From Monocercomonoides exilis PA203 (lineage: Eukaryota > Protista > Preaxostyla): a stretch of DNA of 64,000 nt. The stretch's first letter is position 1; the number at the start of each line of letters is the position of its first letter. The translations under genes were made by a program, and so were the position numbers. Location: contig LSRY02000003.1 in NCBI GenBank assembly GCA_001643675.2, positions 2,108,001-2,172,000 of the forward strand, given 5' to 3'. Below the pieces are notes generated by a model. That model did no database searches and was not told where the DNA came from. It saw nothing but the letters and a program-made list of their open reading frames with translations. Below, one piece after another: positions 235-49,662 of the stretch.

Positions 235-3200
235 TTTTTGCTTTTTTCATCCAAAACAATATTTCCATCAATGGAAAATATTGTCCACTCACTTTCTTTT
301 TCATCATTATTTCAGTAACTTTTTCGTTTGATATCGTATCCAAAGCTGTCACCTTTAAAAAATAAAACATATCGATCACAATTATTATTAAGGTGACTCT
401 GAGTGAAAAAAATGTTTCAAAACAATATTTCTCATCAGAGTCAACATTTTCCATCTCATCTCTAATCTTTTTGCATTCTTTCTGTTCATCAATAAATTCT
501 TTCTCTGATATATTTTTCTCAATGAAAGTTGAGCATGTGGGCTTTTCTTTAACATCTGCACTGAAGGAGCTTCAAAAAACTTTGCCAGACCCTAATACGA
601 TAGTCCAGACAACGCACAACGTTTTTCAAATGCATTATGTTTTTGAAAATGAACCAAGACAAATCGAAATGCTTGTGGAATGGAACTGACAGCTGCATTT
701 CATTTCAGTGGATGATTCTTTTTGAAATCATAACAGTGCTTTCTTTTAAAGGATTATCAGATGGTGTTTTTTCGTTGGCTTTTTTCACATTGTTGTGCTG
801 TGTCTGATGTCTACCAACAATCCGTTTAGCAATAGTTTGAAAATCTGGAAAGACAACGAACTGGGATTACAATTTTGAATTTGAAAAGTGCAAATTAAAA
901 ATCAAAAAAGTTGCAAAAGAATTCGAAAGTTTATAAAACATGAAAAATTCAAAAAAACACGAATTCGGCTTTATTTCAAAAAAATATTATGAGGTCATTA
1001 TTGTAAGATTGTGTTATTCTTTTTGAACAGTAATAAATGTTAAATTATCGTGCTGTTTGAAATTTGGTTTTTTTTCATGAATTCTTGCAATTTGTCTGTC
1101 AAATATAACTCTCAAACAAATTGGAACAATAAAAAAAATCCGACATCCTATAATTATCTTTCTGGTCAAATTCAACCGATTGGGAGTTGGAACACATTAG
1201 AAAACATTTCTCATTTCAATAAATTTGAATATTTAACACACGCGACTTTTCAAAAAGAATAACGCCTATTGGGGATTAAAATTGTAATCAAAACTTTAAA
1301 CGAAGTGAAGATTATTAAGAAAATTCATTGCCAAAGTGAATCAATGAATCATCGAAATGTGAAAACCTTTCCATAAGAGTCAAAAGCTCATATTTGATGG
1401 AAAAGAAAGACAGTGATGGTTTTAAGAGGTTTTGTCACTTTTCAACGTTCATTTATCTATATTCAAAGTGAATTGTCAAACAGAAATTATTGAAAAGAAA
1501 TTTATTCCATTTCAAAAAAGATCAATTGAATTTTGCAACAGAAAACTTTCTATTTGTGGAAGGAAATACTTGTGTTTTGTGCTTCAATAACTCGTTGAAC
1601 AAGTCTCATTAGAACACAAAGTTTTGCAATATTTTCAAAAGGATTATTTATTGTAATGAAATCCAATTATTTTGATATTTGAAAAAAGAGTATTTTTTCC
1701 AAAAACATAAGAAAAACAAATTTAATCATTAAATGATGTTTTTCGGATTTTCACAAAAGAAACAACAAATATTTTCAATTTGAAAAAACTGTGAACTTTT
1801 TTTATTTTTCATTCTGTTCATGAAATTGAATGAAAAGCATTTTCCATAATGTCATTCAAAAGAATGCCACACCATTTTTAAATTTGAAATCAGTGTGAAG
1901 ATTCCTGAAATTTGAAAAACCTTCAAAAAATTGATTTATTTTGAAATTCGATCAAAAAAACAATGTTTTTTTTTGGGATGATTAGCAGTAGGTTCAATTA
2001 CAACTTGAAATTTGCTGAATTCCATCATCATGAAATGTTTCGAATTTTCAATAAAGAAATGATTATTTTGTTAATTGAATATTGATTGGTGAAAGAAATG
2101 AGATAATTGAAAAACAGGGAAAAAGAGAGAGGACCAGTAATTAAATAAATAAATAGGTGACATATGAACAATCAATTCACTTTCATTTATTAGAAATCTC
2201 TTCAAAGAAACTTCAAAATCATATTTGACACTTTCTTCAATGAGGATTTTCAATCTTTAATTTGTAAATTCTTTTATTAAAAGTTTTTGATTTTTTTGGA
2301 TAGAAACTGTAATAATAAGAATAAATATGTTTCGTTCATAAAGATTAACATCATATTTGAAACAAAATGACGATTTTTATTTTCAAGATACTTGCGAAAA
2401 ACAATTTCATTCTTGAAATGAAGATTTTCTTTCTTTGAATGTTTTTGACATGGGAAAACAAGAAGAATGAAAAATATGATTTTGAAATATTCTCCATTTA
2501 CTGAAAAAAAACAAGTGTTTGTGTTATTTTCAGTTTCAAATTTCCAACAGACTTTTCTTTTTTGTTGCAAAGAACTCAAATGACTGATTTGAAAACTGAG
2601 AAGCAGTTTGAGATGATGATTATTTTTGACAAAACTCTTGAATTCAAATAAACTCATTTTATTCAAAAATGGTGGGCTTTTTTCAAATTCAGACTGAAAT
2701 TTGTCCTGAAAAACATGTGATGAAAATAAATCTCTGAAAAATATCCATCATTGAAGCTTTTGACTGGTTTTTTTAATGATTAAAAAAATATTAATTTTTA
2801 ACGGTTCTAATCTTTTTGAATTTTAAATAAAATTGCAACAAAACATCATCAAATTGAGCTTTAAAGACAAAAATCAAAAATTGAATTTGTGAGTTGAATG
2901 AATGTTTCGCAAATATTTTTGTGTCTATTTTGAAGAAGACGCAGATGGTGCGATTATTATTTGGTTAAATAACTCCACAAAGGGAAATTGAAAAGCTCTG
3001 AAAAATTTCATTGTCTAATATACAAATAGCTGCAAAAGTGCACTTTACGAAGCGCGGAAGATTATTATCTTGCATTCCTTTTCTTCTTCTTCTATATCCT
3101 TTTCTCCATCCTTTTTGCAACGTTCTCTCTCACCCTCCCAATGCTCTCACAACTCCATCGATGGAGCCATCCTTCCAAACCTCAACAGCCCTTCCACTTC

Positions 3201-4790
3201 TCTCTCTGCCTTCAACACCTCTTTCCTCCACCAAACACGCTCTTCATCAAATGATCCCGTTAAATATATTGGATCTGAGTCTCAAAGAAAGGAATTAAAA
3301 CGATTGCCATTTACTGCTACGAATAGCTATATATTTGAATGGTGCGAATGGAATAATTCAAATGGAGGAAGCGATTGGGGTGGATCACTGAAAGTTAGTT
3401 GCACAAATGCAAATCTCACAATCACTTCGTGCTCATTCAATAATTGTTCCTGTAATGGAAATGGTGGAGCATTGTTTTGTGAAAGTTTGTTGAAGATAAA
3501 CATCACCAAATCATATTTCTCAAACTGCTCTGCAGTTCATGGAGGTGCTGTCAACACATGGTATCCGCAAACGAATTCTATTTATCACATTTCGGAAAAC
3601 AGAGTGGAAAATTGTTCAATAACATACTGGTGTGGAACTGGTTGGTATTTCTGGATTGGCGATTTTCCATCAAATGGTCAATTCTTTTTCACCAAATGCA
3701 AGTGCATCTCAAATTCTGGTGGTGATTCAACAGGTTCACTCACGTTTCATTGGCCTCCGAATAACAAGCCCAACCTGTTTTCAATCGTTGAGTGTCAGTT
3801 CATCAATAATAAGTTAAGTTCTTCTTCCACATGGGGCGGAGCCGGAATATACTTTGATGGAACTTACTCTTGGATGAATGAAGTCAAATTCATCACATTT
3901 TGTTTCTTTGATGGCAACACTGCGACGAATGGCAGAGGGAATGATGTATTCTTCAATGGAAGCAGCATCACTCAATCTCCTTTCCAGCAATGCGGTTCAA
4001 CAACCACAACAAAAAGAGTGTGGAATGCAGGAACTGCAGATAGCAGTGTGTACAATGGATGGCTTCCAATCATCAGCCAGAACAAAATAGTCTCAAATGG
4101 TGGAACTGATGCTGATGCCTGTGGCAAAACACAGCAAAGCCCATGTGCCACAGTGGAGTATGCTCTCGGGTGCATTGCTCCCTTCAGCGATGCCTCCCTC
4201 TCTCTTCTCGTCTCCACTTTCACTCCCACAAACACTCTTACATTCAATGCAATTGACACAAAAATCACTGGAAATGATGAACTTTTTCTGATTTCTTTAT
4301 TATTCCTTCCATTTTCCATTTCATAGAAAAATTCACAAGCTTTCATTTTCTTTTCAACAAGAGAACGTATCATCACTTTTCTTTTGAGAAGTCTCACATC
4401 GGATCGCATTAAACATATTTCTTCGTCATTACCTCATCTAATTTTTCTTCTCCATCAAATGCAAATAAAGTTCTTTGCTTTTAAAAAACATCTATTTCCT
4501 TCTTCAAAAAGATATCTTTCGATAATATCAGCAATTTCTTCAAAACTTTCAATTTCTTTTGCCATTCCCATTTCTCCTTTTTCATCCGCTGCAGACGCAC
4601 TTATTTCATAGAATTATCCTTCGATTATTTGTTTTCTTATAAATTTCTATTCCTCTTCTCATTTAATCATCATCTCGTTCCATTGAAGGCACATGACGTT
4701 GTGAAATCAATCGAAGATCATCCTCATAATCATTCGCTCCAAATATCCTTTTCTGCCTTGTTCTTTCTGTTTTCTGTAATCTTTCAACTT
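235..4790 (+). repeat. Segmental duplication unit (AT-rich upstream region + beta-helix cassette A + downstream junction); inverted copies at ~26690-30617 and ~38220-42250
   Basis: Mirrored ORFs 2071..2253(-)/29235..29417(+), 3011..3298(+)/28195..28476(-)/39362..39643(-) and 122..454(-)/41891..42172(+); long reverse-complement matches read directly. Confidence 0.9.
3019..4326 (+). pseudogene. Cassette A: Pmp-like right-handed beta-helix surface-protein fragment, no ATG or signal peptide, 3' truncated at KITGN
   Basis: Frame is open from the TAA at 3016-3018 to 4326; repeated GGAL/GGAV and FxxC motifs; Cys framework shared with 7 paralogues; the ORF-track start is a TTG. Confidence 0.8.
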
Positions 4791-7700
4791 CCAAATGAAA
4801 AATGTCAGATTCGATCTTTATAGATTGTGCACCCAATGATCAACTTTTCTTGGTTTGATATTGAATCACTTCCATTGACATATAATTTATACAGATATTT
4901 CGTTATAGAATAAACAATCCTTTTCCGTTTCAGAAAAGAAAATAAAAGATGACACTTGGCCCTGAATTTGACGGGAGTTGAATGAAATGGAAATCACAAT
5001 ATATATTTTTCACTTATTGAAGATGGTGCTGAAGAAGAAGATACAATGAAATGAAATCAATTCGTCCAAAAAGCCTTTTTTCATCATGAGAATAATGAAT
5101 GAAAAATGAAATAAGATGAGCTCAACAATTGATCAATCGAGATGAAGTGAAGAAAATGAAGCAATTTTCTGTTAAATCTAGCATCTCTGCTGATTTAGAT
5201 GAATGGATGCATCAGAAGTTCGATTGCCGATAGAGAAGGAAGTGAGATGAATATTGCAAAAACAATGCAGAAGTTGAAGAACACCAAAAAGGAAGAAAAA
5301 AAGGCGGAAACAAAGGAGAAAAAGGTTAAGATCACAACGAAGAAGAATGAAAATAAAAAAACGAAGAAGACGAAGAAAAAGGCAAAGAAGAAGGCAAAGA
5401 AGAAGAAGTGAAATAGGTGTAATATAGCCCAAAGGCAGAAAAAGGCTGGATTGTTTGAGAGGATGAATTGGATGGGGATGAAGAAGAAAGTGAAGAAGAA
5501 TATGAAACAGAAGAAGAAGAAGAAAAAGAAAAATGAAGAAAAGAAGGCATTGAAGATAATCTTGCTTGTTTTGATGTTGAAGATTGTGATAAATTTGATG
5601 ATGAAGAAGAAAGAAAGAAGAAGGAAGAAGATTTCGGAGAAATAGAACCCATCGGAGAAATACAATCAATATTTCCGTTTCTGTTTTTCCCTTTCCTCTT
5701 TCACAGTCCAATCATCAATCATCAATCCAATTTTCTCCTTTTCCCTCCTCCTCTCTGAATATTCTTCTTCTTCTTCTTCTTCATATTTCTATTGTTCTTC
5801 TGCTATTTCTCTGCTTATTTCTTTCTCATCTCCATTTGATCCATTTTCTTCTTCATTTCTCAACTCTCCCAAAAAATTAACATTGCTCATCAGACAGCAA
5901 ACATTTGGGTGTGGCTGAGTCAAACGAAGATAATCATCCGAATGGAGACATGAAACAGACTGTGATTGAAGATGACGATGAGAAGGAAGATGATGATGTT
6001 GATGGAGGAGAAAATGAAGATATCCATGATGGTGATGAAAATGCTGAGGAAAATAAAAGCGAAGAAGATGAAGAGGAGGATGAGGAAGAGGAGGAAGAGG
6101 CAGCGTGCCTGAAGAGTGCGGAGGCGGAGAAGGCATCTGCACACAAGAGCAATCAGAGCCTTCACAAGTGCTCCAAAAGGGGGATCTTCGACAGCATCTG
6201 CGTGTGGTAGACACTCTCAAACTGTGTGTTCTGCCAGATAGAAACAATTGCAATCACAATCACAATCACAATCACTCGAATTCAGATTGACATATGATAT
6301 GTGAAGAGGAATATGAAGAAGAAGAAGAAGGCGACGATGATAGAGGAATCTGTTTGCATTCTTCCTGTTGCATCGTGACAGAAGCATTGCTGCTTGGAAG
6401 CTCAAAATGAGGGTGACTCCTAACATTCAATGAATTTGAAGCAGATGATTGTGTAGATGGTGAAGAAGGAGGAGAAGGAGGAGAAGGAGGAGAAGGATGA
6501 TGCTCATTCATCATATTCCCTCTTTTCATGCAATTCCGAATAAAATTGTTCCAACCAGAAGACGATTCTTTGTCGCTCCTCTCTTCCCTTCCCCTCCTTC
6601 TTCCCTCTGTTCTCCCAAAGGTGGCAGAAGAGGCAGCGCTTCTTCCCCACAAAATGATCCAGGCAACTTTTCAGTCTAACCAAATGCGTCACATAATTCA
6701 TCCCCAGTCATATTCTTTAACTGCTTTTGTATGTTCCTTTGGCTTTTGAGGGTATTGGAATGCTTTGTTGTGTATGTCTTTCCCCAAGCCCTTATCATCT
6801 CTTTCTTCTTTTATTTCCTCTTCTTCTTCTTTATCATCTTTTTCTTCTTCCTCGTTATCATTATGATCGTCTTCTTCGCATTCGTCGTTGTCAATTTTCA
6901 TTTCATCTGATATTTCCTCCCAATTTTTGGTTGATGTGAGAGAATTGAATGATAACGCTCTAAAAAATTGGAATGTGAAGAGACAACTGGCTCTTTCAAT
7001 TTCTGTGATTGTTAAGATGTCTCCTGCTGCTCGTCTTTGCTGCACATCCTGAAGCATTCAAATAAATCATCATGGATATCACATTGAAGGAGCGAACAGC
7101 TAAATGCAGATGAAGTTGCAGAAGCAGAAGCAGAAGCCGAAAATGAAGAAAAACAAGAGAGAGATGGAGAGTTCGCTCAGTCAGAGACATTCACAAGAAA
7201 TTCACTCACATGTTAGGAGAACACACGTTGCGATGGAGAAATCTCTCGAAGGTCATCTCTGTTGTCATTCGCCCTCCCCAAACAAGAATTGCTTCAATAT
7301 TATTATCTTTTCGTCTGTGTCTCCTTCATTCACTGAAAATGGAGGGAAAGGCATCCTCCTTTTCTTGTTGCATGTTTGTTTCCCTTCTTTTCTTGCCTCA
7401 TCATAACATCTCTTCCATTTTCATTTATTTCAGCTGCTATTCTGTGTTTGAATAAAGATTCCTTTCGTCTTTCTGAGGAGGAATGAAATTCAAAGTCTGG
7501 CGCTGAATTCGATGGGAGTTGAATGAAATGGAAATCACAAAATATATTTTTCAATTATTGAAGAAGGCATTGAAGAAGTTGATTTGAATGAAATGAATGA
7601 AGTTGTTCAAATTGCCTTTTTTTCATCACGAGAATCGCGAATGAAAAATGAAATGAAAGCATTATTGGTGAACGTTCGTTGAGAGGAAGAAAAGTGAATG

Positions 7701-8421
7701 AAATAATTGTTAGTTCAATTTGTCTGCGATTCCATTTGCACAGCTTAAATGCAACAGAAGGTCGATGATCTGATCCAATGCAAAGTTAGTGAATATGGCA
7801 TTGAAGATGTTGGAGATATGGTAAAGATTGCACAGTTTGTGGGAAATGACTAGACGCAGAAGAATTTGAAGAATTTGAAGAAGATGAAGAAGACGAGATG
7901 AATGAGAGATGAACAATCAGTCAAACAACATTTCCGAAGAAGATGATGAAAATGACTCGTGTGATGTTGTCAGTTGGTTTAATGTCACATTTGATAAGTT
8001 GACTTCGGAAGGAATATAAAACCCCAATAACAAATAAAATTGGCCAATTCGCATTAATTTGTCAATGAAGATGGATATCCTCAGTTCATTTGCAAACTTT
8101 GTGTGATTTCATTGCTTTCTCTCCAAAAACAAAAAATAATGATGTTTGTCTGTTGGATCTGAAAAAATGCAAAAGACATAAATATCTGATGAAGATAATT
8201 GCAAAGAAGAAGAAGAATACGAAGATGAAAAGGCAGCAGAAGAAAAAGAAGATTGAGAAAAAGAGGACGAAGGGTCAGAATATAATGCAGAAGAAGAGAC
8301 TGTTTTGCTTGTTTTGACGTTGATGGTGACGAATGAGATGATTAAGACGAAGAAAATGAAGAAAATGAAAAAGAAGGAGAAGGAGAAGGAGAAGGAATGT
8401 TGTGTGCGGAATATGTCTGTC
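4790..8421. pseudogene. Decayed, partly tandem-duplicated low-complexity (acidic/Ser-rich) coding remnants
   Basis: ~4960-5230 resembles ~7500-7790 (ctgaatt..gggagttgaatgaaatggaaatcacaa); only short, stop-riddled E/D/S-rich frames; ~7500-8420 has a diverged inverted counterpart at ~25545-26510. Confidence 0.5.
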
Positions 8422-10179
8422 GGAGAAACAGAAGCTTTTGGATTGCATATTTCCGAATGAGAACGTTCTCATTGGCTTATTTTGGAATCCATGGGAAGAC
8501 GATGATGGTTGAAGAAACTAAAAGGCAAGGAAAAGAGGCAGATAAAGAAGGAAGAAGATGAAGCTGCTAAAGGAGTTGAAAGAGTTGAAAAAGAAATAAA
8601 AGAAAAAGATGAGGAAGAAGAAGAAGAAGAAGAAGAAGAAGAAGATGATGATGATGATGATGAAGTTAATGCTGAATGATCAGAGTTCAACACAATGACT
8701 GCTTTCGCAAACAAAATTCTCGCAGCAGCAGATATGAAAAAAAAAAACGAAAGAAGAAAAAGAAGAAGGGGCATCTGAGAGAGAAATGGAATGAAATGAG
8801 CTCGATGATGCTCTTTGGACGAGCTGGGCGGCAAAGGCGAGCAAGACTCATTTGAAGAAAATACAGGCATAATGAACAGATTCAAATTTCATAACAGACA
8901 ACTGCAGCAAGAGAAGGAAGATTTATTTTATGTTGCAACATGAGAATTTTATGGTTATTTGAACAACAAATTCTCAAATACGAAGAAGGAGTTCTTTCCA
9001 TCAGTCAAACTTAAAAAATCTCGTCAATGAAGAGATTGGAGGAGAAGAAGAAGAAACCATATAATCCGCAAAAATGCAACTTGAAATGGATTGTCACCAG
9101 GAATGACGCTCAACATAAAAAATGCTGTTTGCTGGAATGGAAAAATGATTTAAAAAATACATAAAAATAATTAGTTTTCCATTGATTATCAAAATTCCTC
9201 AAAAGAACACATACACCCTCTCTATTGCAAAAGTAGAAGATTGCCCAATCACTGATGCTGCCATTCTCCTTTTCCATTGTTTCCCTGTGCTCCTTTCTCC
9301 ATCATCCTTTTTTCTCCTTAAATATCCTTCTTTCTATGTTTTCATCCATTTTTTTTCCTGAAAAAAATATCTCCGAATTTTATTCTTTCCAATAACTGTC
9401 CAATTGTTGTCATTCCATTTCGCTCTCATCAAAATGCTTTGAAATTGAATTTATTTTCATCCCCTCTCCCAACTGAATACAAAAAATCTGCAATTCACAT
9501 CTGCTGATTGTCTCTCGGCATAGCTCTCTTCTTATGATCTCCTCAGAAAAGCAAAGGAATGGCCATTTATATAATTTATCAGATTCTTGCACTCTGAGAA
9601 GGCCACAGATGGAAACATCTTTAAAATGAACAAGAATAATAAAAAATGCAAACATCAAACTTTTCATTCATTATTTTGGAAAATGAATTTCCTTCAAAGA
9701 TGCTTTTCATAAAAATCATCTCGCCCAATTCCATCATCAATTCCCCGCCGTCGCTGTCTCGTACCAACGCACAAAATAATATCGCCTATCCTGCAGAAAA
9801 TATTCGTTTGCCGATCTATCATCTTTCCAATGGTTAATTTTGCTCAAAGAAAACAACTCGATCAGAACATCCATAACAATAAACTTGAAAAGTTAAATCA
9901 TTGTTTTTTCTGTGAAATATCTTGCTAAAAATGTCATTATTCAGTTTGATGGTGTGAATGCTTATATTTTTATGACTATTTTGCGTTTTCTATTTTTTTG
10001 TTGTTTCCGCCTTTGAAGGATGTTCTTGTTGAATGTGAATGGGAAATTCGGGATGGTTTCTGTGTTTCTGTGGATTTGCAAAAATGCAGGAGAAGGGCGC
10101 ATTGAAAGCACTCACTGGTTTGAGAGCATTGTTTCCCTTGAATTTGTGATGATTGGGATGATTTCTCTCTATCTCTCTT

Positions 10180-10560
10180 TCTTTCTTGATAAATTTTGAA
10201 GAATAGATAAATGTGATGGCACACGACGAGAAAGAACAGAAACAGGAAATGGAAGAAATGCATGGGACAATAGGCAAAATGGAAGAAGAAGAACAATTTA
10301 TGTCTGCTCTGATGCCTGAAATGCTTGACAAAACGAAAATGAATAATAACGAATGAAGAAAAGAAAAACGACAATGGAAAATTCTATGTTGCTGTTAAAG
10401 CATATGAACTGTTGCAAAGAGCTGAATGGAGCAAGGATTGGTCGTTTTGTCAATCCTTCACTGAGTAGAAAAATTGGAAAGATGATTGTTGATGAAGAAG
10501 AGAAGGATGAAAAATCACTGATTGTCCTTTTCGAATGATGTTTTTCATCGCATGATTGAC
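10180..10560 (+). pseudogene. Fragment of an expanded oxymonad-type uncharacterised helical protein family (mirror copy at ~23406-23786, minus strand)
   Basis: Broken frames read EKEQKQEMEEMH..MEEEE and KKTTMENSMLLLKHMNCC..SLSRKIGKMIVDEEEKDEKSLIVLFE, resembling from memory a Monocercomonoides family (EEKKMSMENAILLLKHVGYC..SLNKRFEKMII). Confidence 0.55.
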
Positions 10561-11935
10561 TTTGCAATTTGTTGAAAAATAGCTTGAATAAACGTCAAAA
10601 AGCGGAAAGGACTGTTTTGAGGTTGTGTGACGCTGATAAATAGAATGTATTATTTCACTTGTTTCATAATTGATGATTGCAATATTTTTTTTTATTTTTT
10701 TGTGTTGATTAATTTAGGTTTCTTCAAAATGATGGCATTGAACGAGACGTCATCAGAAGCGCCTCGGCCACACTGAGCTTGGCATTGTTTGCTTAATTGA
10801 GGATATTTTTTGTGAACAGATGATTCAATGAAAAATATTTGGAAGAGACCGTTGCAGAGCGGCTGTGCTTGGCGAGAGAGGCGACCAGAGAATTGGAAAA
10901 GAAAGGGAAAAGAAGTGGCTTTGGAATAGGATTGTTGGAGGAAGAAAACAAAATGAGAAGAAGAACAAATGAGAAGTTGAGGAGATGAGAGGGGAAAAGA
11001 AGAAAGAGAACGATTGAGTTTTAATTGGAGTGGTAACAAGAAGATAAAGAAGAAGAATTTGAAAATATTGGGGTTTTCTTTTCAAAATGAAAAGTCGGAG
11101 CAACAATTCAAAGTCAGCCAATGACTTGTGGATATGCAGCTTAATTCATGAATTGCAGTTTATCCATCTCAAATTTTGTGTAACAATTTTCAATTCCTTC
11201 TGAAGTCAATTTATCAAATACGATATTTTTTGCCAGTCAACAACATCATACAAAGCATTCTTAACTTCTTCACAAGTATCATTGAAAAAAATGAATTTAT
11301 GCAGATGTCTTTTTTCATCTGAATTGTAAAAGGAAAATGAAAAGAAGGATTACTTAGCGATTGATAAGCCGAGAAGAAGAAATGCTAATGAAACAATTTT
11401 CAGTTGAATTTGTCAAAAATTGCTGATTGAACAGCTTGAATATTTGAATGCCAAAAGTATGATCCAATGCGAAGTGAGATGAATCATCAAAAAAGAAGAA
11501 GGAAAGATCAGCTGAAATTAAACAACAATAGATATGATTTCGAATCAAGAAAAGCGGAGCAGCAGGCTTGCAATCAAAAATGGTGGACGACTTTGCCTTT
11601 TTTGTTTGGTAGATGAAAGAGGCTCAGATGAAAAAAGCATATTATCGAAACAATTCTTGAACGGAATAAATGATTGAAATGATGTTCTTCTTCAGATCAC
11701 ACAATGCCAAATGCCTTCAACGAGAAATCAAAGATGAGACGATGAAGGAAAGTTATTTAGAGGAAAGACATGTTCAAAGAAAAATTCTATGAAACAACAG
11801 AATTTACAGAAGATATATGGTGATTAATCAATCAAATGCAAAAATGAGATGTTTTCTTCAATTTTGTGTGCCATCTCCCCAACTTTCTTCGATTTTACCG
11901 TCACTTGCACATAAATTCACAATTTGTCTGCTCAT

Positions 11936-14230: not shown

Positions 14231-14952
14231 TGCTGATGTTCAATCCTGATTGGAAAAAACAATTTTTGTTTTGAATTAATATTTTCGTTTTTCGAGTTTT
14301 CTTTTTCGAGAGCAGTTTCTGAATGAATGAGTGATGCAATGGGAGAAAAAGAAAAGGATGCTTGTATGATGTTCTGTTTTGCTCGAAGTTCTTTTGCATT
14401 TGTTTGTGTTTGGAACGACGAAATTATTCATAGCCTGGAATGTGTCGTTTTTTGTTTTCTATCACTCAGAAAGTTATTTCGTCATTTGCGTTTATCACAA
14501 TGAAACCAATTGAAGATTGGCGAAGCATGCATTCTATTCTCAAATTTCTTTTTGATCTTTCTGTGTTTCACCGTTGTTTTGTGCTCATTTTTTCTTTTTT
14601 AAAAAAGCATATTCTTGTTGAAGATGAGCCGACTTCGCTTGAATGAAACCTGTTCATTTGAATAAAAAGCACCTATTCGCATTTCATCAAGCGTTGACTG
14701 AACGTCATTTTCTTATTTATTTATAATATTAATTTTTTTTTTTTTCAAAGAAAATTTCACTTTTGTTTCTCCAGTGAACTGCAGATCATCAAAAGATAAA
14801 ATTTTATAAACTATTTTTGAAGAAAGTCATTTCATAATCAAAAAGTTTCACAGTTCTTTTCACTTGATTTTTTTTCCCCGATTTTTATCGCATGACAAAG
14901 ATGTGAACAATAGTTATTTTGAATCACTTTGGTTGAATTGCTGATATACACC

Positions 14953-15058
14953 AAAAATAATTCTAATTCGAAAAAAAATAATTCAATTTCGAAAAAAAAT
15001 AATTCAAATTCGGAATTTATTAATTCAATTTCGAAAATGAATATTTCAATTTCGAAAT
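14953..15058. repeat. ~21-bp tandem minisatellite (~5 units, aaaataattcaatttcgaaa-like); mirror at ~18910-19015
   Basis: Adjacent degenerate units with TTCGAA cores and no unique spacers. Confidence 0.75.
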
Positions 15059-15498
15059 CCATCAAAAACTGAAATTTTTAATTTTTCTCGAGAATGGATT
15101 TCTGAAAAGTTCAAGTTATTTTTTAACCAATCAAATTATATTACTTATAGAAAACTGTTTTTTTATTGCAACAATCAATCAATCAATTTTTTAAAAATTT
15201 TTTTCATTTTCGAAAATCATCACTCAAATAACGATAATTTTATAAAAAATTCATTCTAATGAATAACCAAATAAAAATCATTAAATTTTCAATCACATTT
15301 ATTGAATTATTTCATCACAATAATGTGATTGTTTCATTGGCAAAATTTTGAATAATATCGGTTTTAAACATGAAAATGAATTTCTTTCCTTTTCAAATTA
15401 ACTTCAATCAATAAATCTTCATTCAAAATGAAAGAAAATTTTTTTATGAAAATGCATCATTTTTCAAATATTGATAAACAAAATTTGCTGATGAGATA

Positions 15499-31008: not shown

Positions 31009-31209
31009 CTGATCCTTTTTGAAATCACACTTTCGTTCGAGTTTTGTCAAAAATTTAATCTCAATGGTATTTTGAAAAAATGAACTTAAACTGTTAATAC
31101 ATGTTGTTCATGATGTTGTTATCGAGGAAACAATTTTTTTTCAAAAATCCCGTTGAGATGAAAATTTTGATCAAAATTCGAACGAAAGTGTGATTTCAAA
31201 AAGGATCAG
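31009..31209. repeat. ~200-bp foldback (MITE-like) element
   Basis: ctgatcctttttgaaatcacactttcgttcga (31009-31040) is a perfect complement of tcgaacgaaagtgtgatttcaaaaaggatcag (31178-31209); imperfect pairing continues inward to ~75 bp. Confidence 0.8.
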
Positions 31210-31711
31210 TCATGTTCTATTTTGTTTGAAATATGAATTTTTGAAAAATAAAATTATTCAATCAAATGAAAAGCGAATCAGATTTATTATATTTTTAAAA
31301 AGAAAATTCTGAGAATAGACAATATTTTTATTCACAAAAAATTGAAATCTTTTAAGGAAGTTTCTTTCTCAAAAAATAAAAAATAAAAAAAATTCACAAA
31401 AAAATAAAATGCTTTGTTTTTAAAAGACAAGCGTTTCAAAAGCATATTTTTCAAAAAAAGAAACATGGTCTTGTTGTTTTTCAAATGCATAAATGGAAAA
31501 TAAAAAAAACAATGTGTTGAAACAACATTATAATATTGAAATGAGAATTGATAGATTATTTGGCATTATTTTTTATGCTTTTATTGAATAAAATACAACC
31601 AGATAAAATGTGAAAGTTATTAAAAAAACGCTTTTTCCATGTTCCTAAAAATCTTCATTGTTCCAAGCATAAACATAAAAGTTGTTTCAATGAAACGCAT
31701 CACATTCCTAA

Positions 31712-38414: not shown

Positions 38415-39635
38415 CTATGTGGGAGTGAAAGTGGAGACGAGAAGAGAGAGGGAGGCATCGCTGAAGGGAGCAATGCACCCGAGAGCATACTCCACAGTGG
38501 CACATGGGCTTTGCTGTGTTTTGCCACAGGCATCGACATCAGTTCCACCATTTGCAACGATTTTGTTCTGGTTGATGATTGGAATCCAGCTGTTGAATTC
38601 AGCGTTTTCAGCTGTATTGTTATTCCACACTCTTTTAGTTGGGGTTGTTGAGCCACAATTCTCGAATGGGGATTGAGTGATGTTGCTTCCGTAAAAGAAC
38701 ACATCGTTTCCCCTTCCATTTATTGCTGTATTGCCATCGAAGAAGCAGAATGTGATGAATTTTACTCCATTCATCCACGTGAAAGTTGAATAGAAGAATA
38801 TGGCAGCACCTCCATAATTGGTAGAGGCAGTCAGATTGTTATTAATAAATTGGCAATCATTAACCAAAAATTGATTTGGTTTATTTTGTGGAGGCCAATT
38901 GAATGTGAGAGAACCTGTTGAATCACCACCAGTATTTGCGATACAGGAACAATTTTTGAACAAGAATTTTGCATCAAATGGCATATTATCGAGAGCAAAA
39001 TACCATCCAGTTCCAATATTGCCTTTTATTGAGCAACTTTCAACTCTGTTTTCTGAGAATGTCCAAACAGAATTTGACTGAGGACCAGCAATACAATTCG
39101 CTCCTCCACGGTCAGCAAAGCAACTTGTGAAATTGGATTTTGTGATATCAATTTTTAACAAATTTCCACAATATAACGCTCCACCAGCAGCATTACTTGA
39201 AGAACAATTGTGAAATGAACAAGATGTAATTGTGAGGTTGGCATTTGTGCAATAAACATCAAGAGCACCACCATTATTATTTCCTCCGCTGATTGAATTA
39301 TTCCACTCACACCATTCAAAAAGATAGCTATTCAATTCAGGAAAAGCCAATCTTCCAGGTTTCAATTTATGAGTTTCAGTTCCAATATGCTCAACAGGTT
39401 CATTTGGTGAAGAGCGTATTTGGTGGAGAAAGGAAGTGTTGAAGGCAGAGAGAGAAGTGGATGGGTTGTTGAGGTTGGGAAGGATGGAACCATCGATGGG
39501 GTTGTGAGAGCATTGGGAGAGTGAGAGTGAACGTTGCAAAAAGGATGGAGAAAAGAATAAAGAGGAAGAAGAAAAGGAATGCAAGATAATAATCTTCCGC
39601 GCTTCGTAAAGTGCACTTTTGCAGCTATTTGTATA
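38415..39635 (-). pseudogene. Cassette F: ATG-less mosaic Pmp-like beta-helix fragment, stop just before the common 3' junction
   Basis: Open frame to TFTPT*; blocks shared with D, with B/C and with A/E. Confidence 0.8.
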
Positions 39636-43020: not shown

Positions 43021-44400
43021 AACACCATCTTCTCCAACATCTCCTCTCCTCAATCCCATCCATCTCTTCCATCCCTTCCCTCCCACTCACTCAATCCATT
43101 CATCTCAACCACTTCTTCCACTTCCATCTCCATTTCCACCTCCACCAACATCAATACAATCCCCTCCTTCTCCCTTTATTCGTCCCTCTTCATCCACTCA
43201 ACCATCTTCATCCACACCCACAACCCCATCGATGGTGCCATTCTCCCTTCCCTCAACAACCCCTCCACTTCTCTCTCTGCCTTCAATGCATCTTTTCTTC
43301 ACCAAACACGTTCTTCATCAAATGCTGCTGTTGTATTTGAAGGAAATGAAACTCACAGAAAATCACCTGGAAGACTGGATTCCTTTGATGTGAACAGTCA
43401 TCGCTTTGAATGGTGCGAATGGAATGATTCTAATGGTGGATCAAGTGTTGGCGGTGCACTTTATGTTGCTTGCACGAATGCCAATCTCACAATCACTTCT
43501 TGCTCGTTCAACAATTGTTCAAATACAAATCATGGAGGAGCGTTATATTGTGATTATTTGTTAAAAGTTGATATCGCAAAATCCAATTTCACAAGCTGTT
43601 CAGCTGCATATGGTGGAGCAAATTGCATCAGGTATCCGCAAACAAATTCCGTTTGGACATTCTCAGAAAACACAGTGGAAAATTGTTCAATATCTGGCTG
43701 GTGTGGAACTGGCTGGTATTTTGGGGTTGGTGGAATGCCATCAAATGCTCAATTCCTGTTTTCCAAATGCAAGTGCATCTCAAATTCTGGCGGTGATTCT
43801 GCTGGCTCTCTCACATTCAATAATCCTCCAGGAAACAAACCAAGTCAATTTTCAATCAATGATTGCCAGTTTATAAACAACAAAGTCGAAAATCCAACCA
43901 CATATGGTGGAGCTGGGCTGTGCTGTACAAATACCTTCACTTGGATGAGTGGAGTAAAATTCATCACATTTTGTTTTTTCAATGGCAACACTGCCACAAA
44001 TGGCAGAGGAAACGATGTATTCTTCAGTGGAAGCAGTATCACTCAATCCCCATTTGAGAATTGTGGCTCAACAACTCCAACAAAAAGAGTGTATAATAAT
44101 GGACAAGCAGACAATGCAGTGTATAATGGCTGGCTTCCGATCATCAACCAGAATAAAATCGTTGCCAGCAATGGAACTGATGTCGATGTCTGTGGCAGAC
44201 CCCAACAGACCCCATGCGCCACCATCGAGTATGCCCTCACTGGCTTCATTTCCCTCCTCCAAGACGCCTCTCTCACCCTCCTCAGCTCAACATTTGTTCC
44301 TCTTCAAACACTCACTTTCAGCGCAGTTGACACAAAAATCACTGGAAATGATAAACTTTTTCTGATTTCATTTAAATTTCTTCCATTTTCCATTTCGTAG
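43021..44400 (+). pseudogene. Cassette G: ATG-less Pmp-like beta-helix fragment
   Basis: Frame open from 43021 (NTIFSNISSPQS, cf. NTLFSNISSPQS in H) to the KITGN junction. Confidence 0.8.
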
Positions 44401-47400
44401 AAAAATTCTATACCTATCATCTTCTTTTCAACAGGAGTACATATCATCGCTTATCTTTCATCGAGCCCCAAATTAACCCAGATGAAAACACTTCTTCTTC
44501 ATTTCTTCATTTATTTTCTCTTCTTAATCAAATGCGAATTACGTTCGTTGCTTTTAGGAATCATATGTTTTCCTTTGTTTAATATCCATTTCTTCAATTA
44601 TATCAACAAGCTTTTCAAAAATATCTGTTTCTCTTACAATTCTAATTCCAACTTCCTGAACCGATCAGTGCAAGAATCTTTTGCAACTTCCCTTCAAGCA
44701 TGGGTTTTCCAAAAAATCGCTTTTCATCATCGTTTCATTTTCCTCTCGTTCCGATGAACAAAAAGCATTGCGAAATCTGAAGAAGTCCATCCCCGCAATC
44801 ATTCGTTCCAAATATCCTTTTCTGCCCTGCTTTTTCTGTTTTCTGTGAATTCTTTCAGATTCAAAATAAATAATTCAGATTCTATTTCTATTTTTTATTG
44901 CGCACTTTGTGGTCGGCTTTTCTCGATAGGATTTAAAATCATTTCCGTTGCTGTGTTAGGTTGGTTGAAATTCTATGTCAGAATAAATATTTCTTTCGTC
45001 TTTCTGAGTAGGAATGAAAGACAAGGCTTTGCACTGAATTCGATGGGAGTTGAACGAACTGAAAAAAACAGTATCATTTTTGATGTTCATCGAAGAATGC
45101 ATTGAAGAAGAAAAGAAGGATCACAATTGTTGAAATGAAGATAGATGCCGTACAAATGTGTGCATGAATGAGGAAGAATGAAGTTGAAGTTGAAGAAGGG
45201 GACGAAAGAGACGAAGAAGAGGAAGCAATATGTGACTGAAGAAGATTTTGTGTGTTTTTGGCTATGCGATTCATAACAGGCGTGCTTGTCGCTGAATAAG
45301 CAAGTGAATTGTGAGAAGGCGAATTTTGTGTTTGCAAACCGAGAAATGAGGAAGATGGTTGATTGAATGAAGGAGGATTATCGGAAGACGACGACGAAGA
45401 AGAAGACGAAGAAGAAGATGCAGTTGAGAAATGCGAAAACAGTTGAACGACATTTATGATGTTGAGAATAATTTGTATGAAGTTGTTGATTGGCCAAAAC
45501 GGCTCGCTTGCTGTATAAATTTCAGATTGGTTAGAAAAATTCAATCACAAAATTTGTGACAAACAGATTGTGGAAATCAATCTTGCCGTATTTTTCCAAA
45601 GGCAATTGAATTTCATTTTGCGATTTCCTCTCCATTCCCCTTAGAAACAAAAAATGGAGATATTTCTCAATTTCCATTCCTTTCCATTCCCTTCTTCCAT
45701 TCAGCTCACAAAATCATCAAAAAATATCAATCACTTCCTTTTCTTCATCTTTCCCTGTCTCTTCCATAAAACATTCTCCTCTCATAAAAGTTACCCCCTT
45801 TTCATATGAACATTTCTCAATTTCCCTCTTCTTTCCAGCTTTTGCCCTCTTTTCTTTCTTTTCAAAATCCATTTCTCCAATCACCAATCAGTCCTCTTTC
45901 ATCATCTCCAACCACTTCTCTATATATTTACTACATCATCTTCTCCAAATCTCGCATGTTCCTTCCCCACCCCTTTGTCTCAGAATTTCTTTCATTCAAA
46001 AACCCCTCTTGAAATATTAACATTCAAAAATATACTCAACCCCTACTCCCTGCCACAAAAATTAAACTTCCATCTCTTCTCTGCCCCATATCCCTCATGT
46101 GCCTGGTGTTGATGAGATAGACATCAAATACTGTTTTGGGTGGTTGAGAATATTATTAAAGGAGAGGATCATGAGAAAAACAAAAAAAACACATCCTGAC
46201 AGCCACCACGATGTGTACGGGCTGAAAAGACCCACCAGTGAGATATATGAAATGTTATGTGGAGAAGGATGAAACGTTGCATTCAACCATTCTGAGACTG
46301 AAATGAAGAGATTGATTTTTTGAATGATGTTGGCTGTGGAAATGAGGCTGTTTGAAAAAAAACAGTCGAAGCGCAGTTTGGTCTTTATTTATTTTTCTTT
46401 ATATGAATATTAACCTATTGACTGTTTTTGTGTTTCTTTCAGGGCAGGAGATGGAAAAGAATGAAAATGAATGAAATGTTTATATTTCGTTGTGCAGGGT
46501 GACCACCGAGTTGGGAGAGCGAATTCATATGGAAAGTGCCCAGGATGAAGGGATTGGGAAGGAAATTGGAGATGATATTTTCAGACGAAAAACAATGATG
46601 TTTTTCAATGATGAAAATGGAATTTGAGCAGAATACATGAATTTCACATTTTTCAGAAGAGCTAGAAATCGATGCATTTGATGGAGAAACAACTGATGGA
46701 AAGGATGATTTGCGAATCAGATGATGGAACACTTGAAAACGGAAGGAATTATGAATTTTTATTGGAGGGAAACAGTTGCCAATAGGATAACATAGAGTTA
46801 TTGACTTTAAAATATGTTTAGAAGGTTTGTTGTTGTTATTTATTTGAAGTAATTATTATTATTATTTTTAAGAATGCTGAAAGGATGAGGGATTAGATCG
46901 CTTTGAAGAAGAAAAAGAAGAAAAGTTGGGAAGGAAGAATAAAGAAGGACAGATGAAATGCGAGATATTTCGAAGATGCTTGGCATTGGGCTTTGACAAA
47001 GAATTATGTTTGAGGAAAGATGATTTTTTGTGAAAGAAGGGAAGTGAAAGAAGAAGAGATGGGATGAAAAAGGGATCGCTCAATATTTCATATTTTTAGA
47101 TGGAAAGAGAGAAAGAATCAAATTGAAATTGTTACGAATTCAAAGGATATTATTTGCCAGAAGAAGACAAAATCCTGAAGAAGAGAATTTCAATGAATTT
47201 CTCCGTTGATATTTATTGGTTCTCATCTTCTCGATTTTCAACAATTAAACATTTCATGTCATTTATTCATTATCATCATCTTCTTCTTCTTCAAATATAT
47301 CATCGACATTTCACACAGCATCTCCTTCTTTATCATCATTCACATCATCTGATTGGATTTCTTCACATTTGATATCTGCATCAGAGATTAAGAGAGAAAT

Positions 47401-47679
47401 GAAAAGGAAACAGAGAAATTGTACAACCGAAGGAAAAAAATAAAAAATAAAAAATAGAAGAGGAAAGAGAAAGAAATTGTTAATCTCGGATTCATTCAAG
47501 ATGGAAATGAGATTGAGAGGGTTGAAGATATTTTTGGGTTTAAGAGAGAAGATGTTTCGAAGAGGAGATTCGAGTTGAATGTTGGATTTTGGAAGAAAAG
47601 AATTTGGATGAACGGAGGGTAATTTTGAGAAGTGATATAACAAACAAGGGTGAATGACAAGATTCAGGAAAAAAAACTA

Positions 47680-49662
47680 TCAAATTTGAGAGAAAAGAAA
47701 GAATGCAAGGAGAGGAGAAAATAGAGAAAGCAAAAATAAGAGACGAAAGTTAGAAAGACATTTCATTGGAGAATTTTGAAGGAAAAGCAAGAACCTGCCA
47801 ACATACTCAGCGTTTTCAACTGTTCCTGCATCCCATACTCTATTTGATTCTGTTGTTGAGCCACAATTTTCAAACGGAGATTGTGTGATGGCATTACCAC
47901 TGAAGAACACGTCATTTCCTCTTCCATTTGTGGCAGTGTTTCCATCGAAGAAACAGAATGTGATGAATTTTACTCCACTCATCCAAGTGAAGGTGTTTGT
48001 GCAACACAGCGCAGCTCCTCCGCGTGAAGATGATGCACTTGTCAATTTATTATTTATGAATTGGCAATCATTAACAAAAAATTGACTTGGTTTATTTTGT
48101 GGAGGATTATTGAATGTGAGAGAGCCAGTTGAATCGTTGCCAGAATTTGCGATGCACTTGCAGTTTGTGAACAAGAATTGAGCATTTGATGGCATTCCAC
48201 CAACCCCAAAATACCAGCCAGTTCCACACCAGCCAGATATTGAACAACTTTCCACTGTGTTTTCTGAGAATGAATAAACAGAATTTGATTGTGACCCACC
48301 AATACAATTTGCTCCTCCATGAGCAGCTGAACAATTTGTGAAATTGGATTTTGTGATATCAATTTTTAACAAATTTCCGCAGAACAATGCTCCAGCATGA
48401 TCACCGGTTGAACAGTTATTGAATGAACAAGAAGTGATTGTGAGATTTGCGTTTGTGCAAACAACATAAAGTGCACCTCCATAGTTATTTCCACCAGTTG
48501 AATCTTTCCATTCGCACCACTCGAAGCGATGGCTACTTGCATCGAATGAAGTCAATCTACCAGGTTTCGCTCTTTGAGATTCTGATCCAATATATTCAAC
48601 AGGAGCATTTGGTGAAGATCGAGTTTGATGAAGAAAAGAAGCATTGAAGGCAGAGAGAGAAGTGGATGGGCTGTTGAAGTTGGGGAGAATGGCACCATCG
48701 ATGGGGTTGTGGGTGTGGATGAAGATGGTTGAGTGGATGGAGAGAGATGAGTGAAGAGAGAATGAGGGAATTGAATTGGTGTTGGTGTTGGTGGAAGAGG
48801 AAGAAGAGGAAGAGGTGGTTGAGATGAATGAATTGAGTGAGTGTGAAGGAAGGAATGGAAGTGGTGGAGGGGATTGGGGAGAGGAGATGTTGGAGAAGAG
48901 GGTGTTTGAGAGATGGAGATTGAGATGGATTTGGAGGTGGGGATGGGATTGGTGATAGATATGGAAAGGGGAAGGGGAAGAGGAAATGGAAGGGGAAAGG
49001 GAAGGGGAAGGAGAAGAAAAAGAATATGATGAGGATGAGGATGAGGAAGATGAAGGAGAAGGGGAAAGGGATGGAGAAGGAGAAGGGGAAGGGGAAGAGA
49101 GGGAAGAAGGAGAAAAAAGGAAGGGCTGGATGAGGGGGATGAAGGAGGAGAAAGAGGAGTGGGAGACGGAGAAGGAGGCAGGAATTGGAGAGTGGGCATT
49201 ATGGAGGAGATTGTTTGGGGTGGAGAAGAGGGGGAAGGAGAAGATGGCAGGTTGGCGGGTGGTGAGGGAGAAGTTTGTGAGGGCGAGGGAGGCATGGGCA
49301 GAGAGGAAGAGGGGGCATTGGTGGTGGTGGTGGTGGTGGTTGTTGAGTGAAGGCGGGTGGATGGTGCAAGTGGAGGAGGAGATGGATGCAGCGGAGTGGT
49401 GTTGGGCAGTGAGGAGTGGACAGCCACTGAGAGGGATGAGGTTGAGATGGGTCACACACAAGGAGGTGTTGATGAGGGCGAGGCTTGTCTGAGCACCACA
49501 GATGTGATTTCCCGATGCATGTTCCACCTTGTCTGGGCGAGCGCCTCTGATGATGCTGTTTGCGATGTCTTCTCCATGAACGAGATTTATGGTGAGGAAT
49601 GCGACGAGTATTTGAGCTGATACTGTGATCCTAATCATTTTCAAACTGCAGTGCAATTTCAT
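47680..49662 (-). CDS. Copy H: the only member with the full N-terminus (predicted signal peptide, His- and Ser/Pro-rich linker, beta-helix domain); 3' truncated or spliced
   Basis: ATG at 49662 (or 49638): MKLHCSLKMIRITVSAQILVAFLTINLVHG-EDIA; family homology stops at ~47800 (RVWDAGTVENAEY). Confidence 0.75.
   Translation of the reverse strand: MKLHCSLKMIRITVSAQILVAFLTINLVHGEDIANSIIRGARPDKVEHASGNHICGAQTSLALINTSLCVTHLNLIPLSGCPLLTAQHHSAASISSSTCTIHPPSLNNHHHHHHQCPLFLSAHASLALTNFSLTTRQPAIFSFPLFSTPNNLLHNAHSPIPASFSVSHSSFSSFIPLIQPFLFSPSSLSSPSPSPSPSLSPSPSSSSSSSSSYSFSSPSPSLSPSISSSPSPFHIYHQSHPHLQIHLNLHLSNTLFSNISSPQSPPPLPFLPSHSLNSFISTTSSSSSSSTNTNTNSIPSFSLHSSLSIHSTIFIHTHNPIDGAILPNFNSPSTSLSAFNASFLHQTRSSPNAPVEYIGSESQRAKPGRLTSFDASSHRFEWCEWKDSTGGNNYGGALYVVCTNANLTITSCSFNNCSTGDHAGALFCGNLLKIDITKSNFTNCSAAHGGANCIGGSQSNSVYSFSENTVESCSISGWCGTGWYFGVGGMPSNAQFLFTNCKCIANSGNDSTGSLTFNNPPQNKPSQFFVNDCQFINNKLTSASSSRGGAALCCTNTFTWMSGVKFITFCFFDGNTATNGRGNDVFFSGNAITQSPFENCGSTTESNRVWDAGTVENAEYVGRFLLFLQNSPMKCLSNFRLLFLLSLFSPLLAFFLFSQI

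Follow-up and report, generated by a model that had tools for sequence, protein, structure and literature searches.

We analysed a 64,000-nucleotide window of the Monocercomonoides exilis genome (contig C25:2,108,001-2,172,000) and found eight paralogous open frames of 406-767 codons, in both orientations, that are truncated copies of the outer beta-helix 'head' of giant surface receptor genes. The reading that we favor, and consider moderately probable, is that these frames are truncated, non-autonomous head modules derived from a large family of ~2,900-aa type I membrane proteins, and that they lie in a recombining array of ~1 Mb on C25 in which gene conversion maintains them.

Truncated copies of a receptor head domain

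Complete members of the family are single-exon genes encoding ~2,900 aa in one continuous ORF. The encoded proteins combine a signal peptide and a Ser/Pro-rich stretch with Pmp-like beta-helix modules, and they also have a transmembrane helix and a tail that is a kinase C-lobe. In the complete gene L003:582-9275, of 2,897 aa, the signal peptide and transmembrane helix are present and the kinase C-lobe matches PF07714 (3.5e-9). The closest proteins to the window copies in a protein similarity search were from M. exilis only. All eight window copies are pieces of the first quarter to third of the full-length protein and lack the membrane anchor, and as no copy carries the transmembrane or kinase part they are fragments of receptor-kinase-like (TKL) members and not members themselves.

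Frame limits were defined as stop-to-stop open frames, and the resulting coordinates bore out the first-pass annotation in its description of eight paralogous frames in both orientations. Judged by full-length coverage and by frame starts, the copies are partial and mostly start-less, as had been proposed. Copy A (3019-4326, forward strand, 435 codons) covers aa 305-688 of the full-length protein and has no start, signal peptide or membrane anchor. The same residues are covered by copy D (28468-26978, reverse strand, 496 codons), the tail of which is lengthened by a 17-nt insertion past the 3' junction, while copy F (39635-38415, reverse strand, 406 codons) covers aa 305 to about 662-688, copy E (31712-33085, forward strand, 457 codons) aa ~240-255 to 681-688 and copy G (43021-44400, forward strand, 459 codons) aa 237-688. 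The first in-frame Met in these five copies lies 217-307 codons into the frame, which agrees with their description as start-less. They had also been called free of stops; this is correct in that they are open for 406-496 codons, but the last ~25 codons of copy F are interrupted, in comparison with A, E and G, by a premature TAG and then by a TGA, so that this copy shows some decay.

Copies B (14239-11936, reverse strand, 767 codons; no signal peptide or membrane anchor) and C (19770-22031, forward strand, 753 codons) are mirror twins that are identical across the cassette and run from aa 297 to about aa 1,044-1,085. The long C-terminal part ascribed to these two copies alone is present as an extra 355 aa, but it stops at ~aa 1,085 of ~2,900. 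B was rejected as a start-less frame as it has an in-frame ATG at 14230, three codons inside the open frame. C has no in-frame start near its 5' end, as is also the case for A, D, E, F and G, and it lacks the ATG of B solely because its C-run is one base shorter, a difference that could be a base-calling error of the nanopore assembly.

Copy H (49725-47680, reverse strand, 681 codons) covers aa 1-617 followed by non-homologous sequence, and it alone has the N-terminus with a signal-peptide-like start (MIRITVSAQILVAFLTINLVHG), as originally noted. It contains a start codon, signal peptide, N-terminal domain, Ser/Pro-rich stretch and the head up to aa 617. For ~1 kb from the start codon (49700-48640) H is ~94% identical to L027 (C25:1,790,925), a complete near-twin 317 kb distant. 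The following ~0.5 kb patch (48630-48090) is just 66-90% identical to L027, and a 191-nt stretch (47885-48075, reverse strand) between this diverged patch and the truncation point at about 47836 is again identical. In the replaced patch the nearest neighbor of H is G (0.91) and the nearest neighbor of L027 is the complete gene L026 (0.92). H was considered and rejected as an expression or recipient site, as it is a 3'-truncated duplicate of a complete gene and is without a membrane anchor. No further family piece beyond A-H was found in the window, and the 'neighbouring remnants' described as full of stops are merely non-homologous flanks.

The proposed beta-helix nature of the frames held up in structure prediction. 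The AlphaFold model had a pLDDT of ~90 over residues 70-320, and VIA-align against pectate-lyase-type beta-helices gave Z scores of 15-17.7 with ~220-260 residues aligned at an rmsd of 3-4 A; the matches included beta-helix enzymes, tailspikes and adhesins. Foldseek alone gave no significant structural match. The family profile reached PF02415- and PF13229-carrying proteins at E values of 1e-30 to 1e-52, and no Pfam match above the gathering score was obtained for B, D, H or the ectodomain of full-length L003. These models predict a right-handed parallel beta-helix for the window frames. The conserved blocks singled out in the first reading (FEWCEW, NANLTITSCSF, GWYF, GSLTF, CQFINN and NGRGNDVFF) are invariant or near-invariant columns in a 48-sequence alignment, and they do alternate with variable loops of the predicted helix.

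Constraint and exchange in a megabase array

Genome context was counted among 109 scored matches, of which 35 fell within open frames of at least 2,000 aa. Truncated copies were concentrated in C25:1.52-2.51 Mb, where 53 were counted and only two contained stops, as compared to 8 of the 19 truncated copies elsewhere; dispersed fragments on other contigs had 2-4 stops. Within the window, B and C are held in a palindrome (7834-26151) with arms at 7834-15554 and 26151-18414. Identity between the arms is 98.0% over their full length and rises to 100% in the inner ~4.9 kb. A tyrosine-recombinase element forms the spacer (15555-18413), and such elements were found both inside and beside the array.

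The copies are open beyond what chance would give. Pairwise comparison of the copies gave dS of 0.6-1.3 and dN/dS of 0.17-0.31, and in neutral simulations with random substitution a frame stayed open in ~10% of trials at 5% divergence and in ~1-2% at 10%. The claim that the copies are kept open under coding-type constraint therefore stands. Truncated and complete copies had nearly the same pN/pS (0.35 and 0.36, respectively) with the same block-by-block profile, and the constraint ended exactly where homology to the complete genes ended. In the block-wise check that had been suggested, no block had a pN/pS above 1. In tracts of at least 90% identity pN/pS was 0.27 for truncated-truncated pairs (at pS 0.14) and 0.18 for complete-complete pairs.

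The copies are also recombinational mosaics, as first proposed. The upstream flank of A (1486-3065, forward strand) recurs with 97-100% identity beside D (29999-28420) and F (40979-39590), but the cassette bodies of the three copies are just 55-80% identical. The best partner along the copies switched every ~100-250 nt, and none of 5,000 permutations matched the observed runs of concordant polymorphic sites. In the tree, truncated copies were interspersed among complete ones, and copies sharing flanks were polyphyletic; the AU test rejected both an A+D+F clade (p 0.002) and an E+G clade (p 1e-11). B and F, which are 78% identical overall, share an exact tract of 116 nt (13404-13519, reverse strand; 38746-38861 on the F side). 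In a sample of 46 loci, taken from more than 500-2,000 candidates and biased toward high scorers, long tracts were shared by 14% of complete-complete pairs, 13% of truncated-truncated pairs and 3% of mixed pairs on the same contig, and by about 1% of pairs between contigs.

Together these data suggest how the array may have formed. It would have been built on C25 by palindromic and tandem segmental duplication with breakpoints inside cassettes. New modules would arise, as in the case of H, as truncated copies of complete genes, while the old modules (A, D, E, F and G), all joined to a dispersed repeat at the same 3' junction, would have multiplied to dozens of copies. Modules would be overwritten, by frequent segmental conversion and by unequal recombination among family members, with sequence already filtered by selection; this exchange would run mostly between neighbors of the same class, and it would leave the modules mosaic, open and with the constraint profile of the complete genes. 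The array would thus be a recombining pool of head-domain variants, and any exchange of patches with complete genes would be confined to an evolutionary time scale. Conversion, and not direct selection on the fragments, probably maintains the modules in this model.

Alternative readings

The constraint in the truncated tracts (pN/pS 0.27) could equally arise if selection acted on the fragments themselves, whether as donors or as proteins, and the low breakage in the array (2/53 compared to 8/19) would also be predicted if the array had a selected function. One such function is that of a distributed donor library, a megabase array kept by selection in which the head-domain cassettes would patch, by segmental gene conversion, dozens of giant Pmp-like receptor-kinase genes in place of a single expression site. 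We regard this as possible but rather unlikely.

In another reading, which we judge unlikely, the frames would be expressed, either as internal exons joined to unseen upstream exons or as short head proteins, soluble or secreted, that begin at non-canonical or internal starts. The constraint equals that of complete genes, B and H have an in-frame ATG, H has a signal peptide, and the open frames of A, D and F contain a branch-point-like CTAAT and an AG directly at their 5' end. However, the complete genes are intron-less in this region, no GT occurs in copy A from the 3' junction to the stop, and no upstream exon with an ATG, a hydrophobic (signal-peptide) stretch and a donor was found; the internal exons of an ordinary spliced gene raised in the first-pass annotation therefore gained no support. 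The frames also have no conserved start, and their constraint does not continue past the homology to complete genes. Four RNA runs contained 20-25% of the 31-mers of 27001-33000, so that D, E or their surroundings may be transcribed to some extent. However, 31% of these words are found again in other parts of the window and at least 6.5% in the 46 other loci, and this recurrence can explain the share without transcription of D or E; no RNA-derived protein identical to D was found. Public annotation names some such fragments as genes (for example MONOS_18537 and MONOS_9953 on a 2,548,433-bp contig). We infer that the modules are non-autonomous and not translated.

The recombinational surface-variation system originally suggested would be a programmed silent-cassette archive, in which segments of a donor array are copied one-way into expressed receptor genes and so vary the cell surface, as in vlsE, pilE/pilS, VSG and msp2. 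The copies do recombine, they are start-less and partial, they correspond exactly to the membrane-distal head and are open under constraint, and they form a dense array with few broken copies. Significant tracts common to old truncated-lineage copies and complete genes were also found (for example G-L024, 77 nt exact, and L008-L045, 96 nt), which favors this reading, but in the same contig mixed-class tracts were 4 times rarer than within-class tracts. In place of a single expression site there are at least 35 intact family genes of 2,000-3,100 aa on many contigs, and H is a truncated duplicate and not a recipient site. With no block above a pN/pS of 1 and the 3' end of F decaying, a programmed archive is quite unlikely. 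Host pressure would be a putative rationale for such an archive in M. exilis, a gut commensal.

In a further reading the cassettes would be passengers: a piece of a gene would have been taken up by a mobile or dispersed repeat, or have become fused to one, and have multiplied along with it (Pack-type transduplication). The 3' junction and adjoining repeat (4276-4900, forward strand, with the junction after ...ACTGGAAATG) are shared by A, D, E, F and G, and the same junction was found in 25 other places among 42 scored matches, on at least 9 contigs; the repeat itself has at least 210 candidate sites on many contigs. A-type 5' leaders are likewise dispersed (C30, C5, C10, C13 and others), adjoining short broken fragments, tyrosine-recombinase elements are present in and beside the array, and in one public protein model the domain is joined to a HARBI1-type nuclease. 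However, no transposase, terminal repeats or target-site duplications were tied to the cassette unit, and the 1.6-kb upstream flank of A, D and F has only 4-5 genome copies, all local on C25. Such capture would account for dispersal and not for openness or mosaicism, and as the explanation of the frames we consider it improbable, although it is compatible with, and not opposed to, the head-module array that we favor.

Neutral debris, meaning recent duplicates or dead pseudogenes that are open by chance and exchange nothing, could draw on the late stops in F, the broken fragments on other contigs and the identity of B and C, but it is contradicted by the dN/dS at these dS values, by a ~1-2% chance of staying open at 10% neutral divergence for seven independent copies, and by the tract and AU tests with their polyphyletic shared-flank groups, and is extremely improbable.

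Relation to known systems and meaning for M. exilis

In silent-cassette donor archives the copies are transcriptionally silent and without a start or promoter, segments pass one-way to one or a few dedicated expression sites while the donor stays unchanged, and switching is frequent within clonal populations. The M. exilis array resembles such archives (Borrelia vls, Neisseria pilS, Anaplasma msp2, Trypanosoma VSG pseudogenes, Babesia ves and chicken psi-V) in having arrays of partial, start-less copies of the exposed variable part of a surface protein, in its conserved blocks and variable stretches, and in the openness and short-patch mosaicism of the copies. In contrast to these systems, M. 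exilis has dozens of intact full-length genes and no single expression site, its exchange is mostly within class and depends on proximity, and its blocks show no diversifying selection by pN/pS.

The fold is like that of chlamydial Pmp repeat and right-handed beta-helix proteins (PF02415, PF13229) in that a right-handed parallel beta-helix with repeated GGA-type and FxxN-type motifs is predicted. The window proteins and the full-length member differ from these in falling below Pfam thresholds, the link being seen through the family profile only, and whereas the Pmp helix is an autotransporter passenger, that of M. exilis forms the ectodomain of a type I membrane protein that is eukaryotic and has a kinase-like tail.

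Large near-identical inverted repeats carrying family members are also known from the ampliconic palindromes of primate and mouse sex chromosomes, where arm-to-arm gene conversion keeps palindrome-housed multigene families alike (PMC8327919). The M. exilis palindrome differs in that it carries truncated gene pieces and has a tyrosine-recombinase element as its spacer, and from one palindrome to another the cassettes are strongly divergent.

In the searched text of PMC6759080 and PMC8767320, kinase genes are the largest M. exilis gene family and overlap unclassified repeats. The full-length relatives described here likewise end in a PF07714 kinase C-lobe match, whereas the window copies are without any kinase part, and no description of arrays of truncated head-only copies, palindromes or mosaicism was found in the searched text of these two papers. 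Unclassified repeats are given there as 35% of the genome (PMC8767320), and even on a cautious reading the array accounts for part of them. On the same reading, it illustrates the shaping of the largest gene family of M. exilis by palindromes, unequal recombination and short-patch conversion, and it cautions annotators that hundreds of open frames in this genome are gene fragments.

Should complete genes really receive patches from the array, this would amount to cassette-based diversification of a new, many-recipient kind. It would be found in a eukaryotic lineage that has been little studied, and its target would be receptor-like proteins and not a single coat antigen. Were the donor-library reading true, the array would generate diversity in many recipients for the ligand-binding tips of receptors in a mitochondrion-less gut flagellate, as a eukaryotic counterpart of the psi-V and VSG archives acting on a receptor repertoire.

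Truncated copies and the complete genes of the family

Eight paralogous open frames in both orientations were found where the first-pass annotation had placed them, on the plus strand (A, 3019-4326; C, 19770-22031; E, 31712-33085; G, 43021-44400) and on the minus strand (B, 14239-11936; D, 28468-26978; F, 39635-38415; H, 49725-47680), with stop-to-stop frames of 406-767 codons. As annotated, A, D, E, F and G have no early start, their first in-frame Met coming only at codon 217-307, H is the sole copy with an N-terminus (a start codon and a signal-peptide-like segment at its beginning) and the long C-terminal part, a further 355 aa, is limited to B and C. The motifs quoted as conserved blocks, FEWCEW and GWYF among them, are invariant or near-invariant columns in a 48-sequence alignment. 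The stop-riddled remnants described beside the frames were not recovered, as the window contains no further family remnant besides the eight frames. Late stop codons are present in copy F. In a protein search the nearest proteins to copy B were from M. exilis only, at 66-82% identity. A contig search, from which the M. exilis genome's own records were possibly left out, returned no contig encoding B.

The assembly searched comprised 82.3 Mb in 101 contigs, of which C25, the contig that carries the window, accounts for 2,548,433 bp. Among 109 scored genome matches 35 were complete members, single continuous ORFs of 2,000-3,100 aa. One of these, L003 (582-9275), encodes 2,897 aa laid out as a signal peptide, a conserved N-terminal part, a Ser/Pro-rich stretch, several beta-helix modules, a transmembrane helix and a tail that matches the C-lobe alone of a protein kinase model (PF07714, E 3.5e-9). 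This tail fits a published remark that the tyrosine-kinase-like genes of M. exilis are its largest family and overlap "unclassified repeats" (PMC6759080, PMC8767320). On the L003 protein, A and D cover aa 305-688, F aa 305-662, E aa 255-681, G aa 237-688, B and C aa 297-1044 and about 40 further residues that are degenerate, and H aa 1-617. By this coverage all eight window copies are only pieces of the complete protein, taken from its first quarter to third on the membrane-distal side, and comparison with L003 found a membrane anchor or kinase tail in none of the eight. No description of these truncated-copy arrays in M. exilis was found in the literature searched.

Pfam gave no match to the head above threshold in the window proteins. 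The AlphaFold model of G, built with the family alignment, was confident over residues 70-320 (pLDDT about 90). Foldseek matches in the PDB were all beta-helix proteins but were without significance. VIA-align of the G model settled the predicted head fold as a right-handed beta-helix, aligning about 220-260 residues (Z 15-17.7, rmsd 3-4 A) with right-handed beta-helices of the pectate-lyase type, tailspikes, IgA1 protease and the PfbA adhesin. A family profile search found 3,040 cluster representatives at E <=0.001; seven of these were scanned, and Chlam_PMP repeats were present in five, three of which also had Beta_helix, and a pectate-lyase-like adhesive domain was present in one of the seven.

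A, D, E, F and G end at one common 3' junction directly after ...ACTGGAAATG, through which B and the complete genes continue. A junction-spanning query had 42 scored matches; 25 of these, at other places spread over C25 and at least eight further contigs, ran end to end, and its matches to complete genes end exactly at the junction. The sequence 3' of the junction (4283-4900, 33090-33570, 44410-45110 and 26980-26500) belongs to a dispersed repeat, for which at least 210 candidate sites were counted on many contigs, several of them 20-60 kb or less from a contig end; the repeat may be a transposon or a subtelomeric repeat. The 5' junction is common to A, D and F, and so is a 1.6-kb upstream flank, which has only 4-5 genome copies, all on C25; the last ~350 nt of the flank recur at 70-82% identity beside short, mostly broken fragments on other contigs. 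The common junctions together with the copies of flank and repeat thus mark the short modules as an old truncated lineage that was amplified and dispersed. That the A/D/F flank is itself a transposon was ruled out by its few and local copies. In P0008, a public M. exilis protein of 764 aa, the gene model joins a HARBI1-type nuclease (PF01609, PF13359) to the head domain, which reflects either a wrong join in the model or a cassette beside a Harbinger-type transposon.

The palindrome, neighbouring elements and copy H

Copies B and C lie in an 18-kb palindrome (7834-26151) with arms at 7834-15554 and 26151-18414. The arms are 98.0% identical (92 mismatches, 43 gaps), not 100%, which speaks for a genuine palindrome rather than an assembly error, and their inner ~4.9 kb is 100% identical. 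Copy B carries an in-frame ATG at 14230, and C, its mirror twin, loses this ATG from the frame solely through one base in a run of C (CCCCCC at 14187-14196 versus CCCCC at 19771-19781), the sole difference between the inner arms and one that could be a nanopore homopolymer error. The 2,859-nt spacer (15555-18413) is a degenerate version of a tyrosine-recombinase element at 50785-54766, to which it is 78-81% identical and inverted, and the inner limits of the arms are also the limits of this element copy. The element at 50785-54766 has two adjacent minus-strand open frames, 51042-51650 and 51654-52787, with a tyrosine-recombinase-like ...YSIRHAVITHLA... motif, no Pfam match in either frame, and 40-nt inverted repeats nearby (50081-50120 and 50745-50784).

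In the genome search many truncated copies of the array were inverted pairs with the same scores and frame lengths, such as C25 2050350(-)/2065103(+), 1547322(-)/1553195(+), 2500296(+)/2505474(-) and 1690160(-)/1697932(+), and because of these pairs palindromes of the B/C kind seem to be the norm throughout the megabase array. Ordinary-looking genes break up the array at 56609-57895 (-), which has a ubiquitin C-terminal hydrolase match (PF00443, E 3.9e-9) and a long Ser run, and at 59595-63998 (+), where an open frame continues past the window end after at least 1,468 codons.

Copy H was compared with L027, a complete gene at C25:1,790,925. The two are about 94% identical over ~1 kb from the start codon to ~48640, followed by a ~0.5-kb patch at 66-90% identity and then 191 identical bases, after which homology ends. 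H is a complete gene's recent duplicate, truncated on the 3' side, and is not an expression site. We had considered the 191-nt identity as conversion between cassette and complete gene; this was withdrawn given the ~94% likeness of H and L027 over 1 kb, and the tract was probably inherited by both from a common ancestor, the patch next to it having been replaced. Within the patch the copy closest to H is G (0.91), which lies next to it, and the one closest to L027 is L026 (0.92), also a complete gene; because each partner has its own closer relative the direction of replacement is not polarised.

Sequence exchange among copies

Exchange was assessed against 46 loci outside the window, a sample biased to high-scoring copies and drawn from 512 to about 2,000 candidates genome-wide. 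The A, D and F flanks are 97-100% identical until ~150 nt inside the cassette, where identity drops abruptly to 55-80% and remains low onward, which places the breakpoints of recent duplications within cassettes. When 48 cassettes were placed in a tree, truncated copies were interspersed with complete ones, with 9 changes for 11 labels, equal to shuffles. For the cassette body, monophyly was rejected both for A+D+F (p-AU 0.002) and for the tandem pair E+G (p-AU 1e-11), groups defined by their flanks and named after the first tree had been seen. The closest relative of each copy, truncated or complete, switches every ~100-250 nt, and pairs that are ~80% identical overall contain exact common runs of up to 116-205 nt. 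None of 5,000 permutations equalled the concordant polymorphic-site runs in tract-sharing pairs.

Long tracts were found in 14.4% of complete-complete pairs on the same contig versus 0.9% on other contigs, in 13.3% versus 0% (0/10) of truncated-truncated pairs, and in 3.3% versus 0.8% of mixed pairs. Because of these shares by pair class and contig, the tract pattern is that of proximity-dependent ectopic conversion across the whole family, not that of a preferred route leading from the array into complete genes.

Expression, coding constraint and the nature of the array

One "synthetic metagenome" study supplied four RNA runs, which contain between 20 and 25% of the 31-mers sampled from 27001-33000. 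These metatranscriptome runs (2024) are small, about 60-65 million letters each, and so large a share of a repeat region from an 82-Mb protist genome is odd. Of the 31-mers in this region 31% also occur at other places in the window and at least 6.5% are found again in a set of just 46 other loci, so the RNA word share says nothing on D or E. A protein search for RNA-derived products with a D-specific piece returned nothing but annotated paralogues from M. exilis, at <=78% identity. A CTAAT...AG at the 5' end of the A, D and F frames would suit internal exons of spliced genes, a reading that otherwise appears to find no support in the sequence; the complete genes have no intron in the head region, copy A has no GT from its 3' junction to its stop, and no upstream start-plus-hydrophobic (signal-peptide) exon with a donor was found.

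Window-copy pairs gave dN of 0.15-0.24, dS of 0.58-1.30 and dN/dS of 0.17-0.31. Pooled pN/pS was 0.35 in 11 truncated versus 0.36 in 35 complete copies with an unchanged block-by-block profile, and in these copies no block had pN/pS >1, giving no positive selection by block. In the most recent tracts (>=90% identical) pN/pS rose from 0.18 in complete-complete to 0.22 in mixed and 0.27 in truncated-truncated pairs, at most a slight relaxation of constraint in the last. In a simulation of random substitution, frames stayed open in ~40% of trials at 2% divergence, ~10% at 5% and ~1-2% at 10%. Recent neutral duplication was ruled out by the dS and dN/dS values together with this simulation, and the open frames are not due to chance either. 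A stop inside the 378-aa match was found in 2 of 53 truncated copies in C25:1.52-2.51 Mb versus 8 of 19 elsewhere, in a list biased to high scorers.

We consider it fairly probable that the window belongs to an array of about 1 Mb, made up of non-autonomous head modules, built by duplication and overwritten by short-patch conversion. Such an array would have been built through palindromic and tandem duplication with breakpoints within cassettes, and its modules would be overwritten continuously through conversion with neighbours and more rarely with complete genes, which would keep them open and family-like. The modules may be either just passively maintained or selected as donors. The first-pass annotation had proposed a silent-cassette archive driving recombinational surface variation; this reading lacks the parts that would define a programmed archive (an expression site, one-way transfer and switching), but it may hold in the form of a slow reservoir with many recipients.
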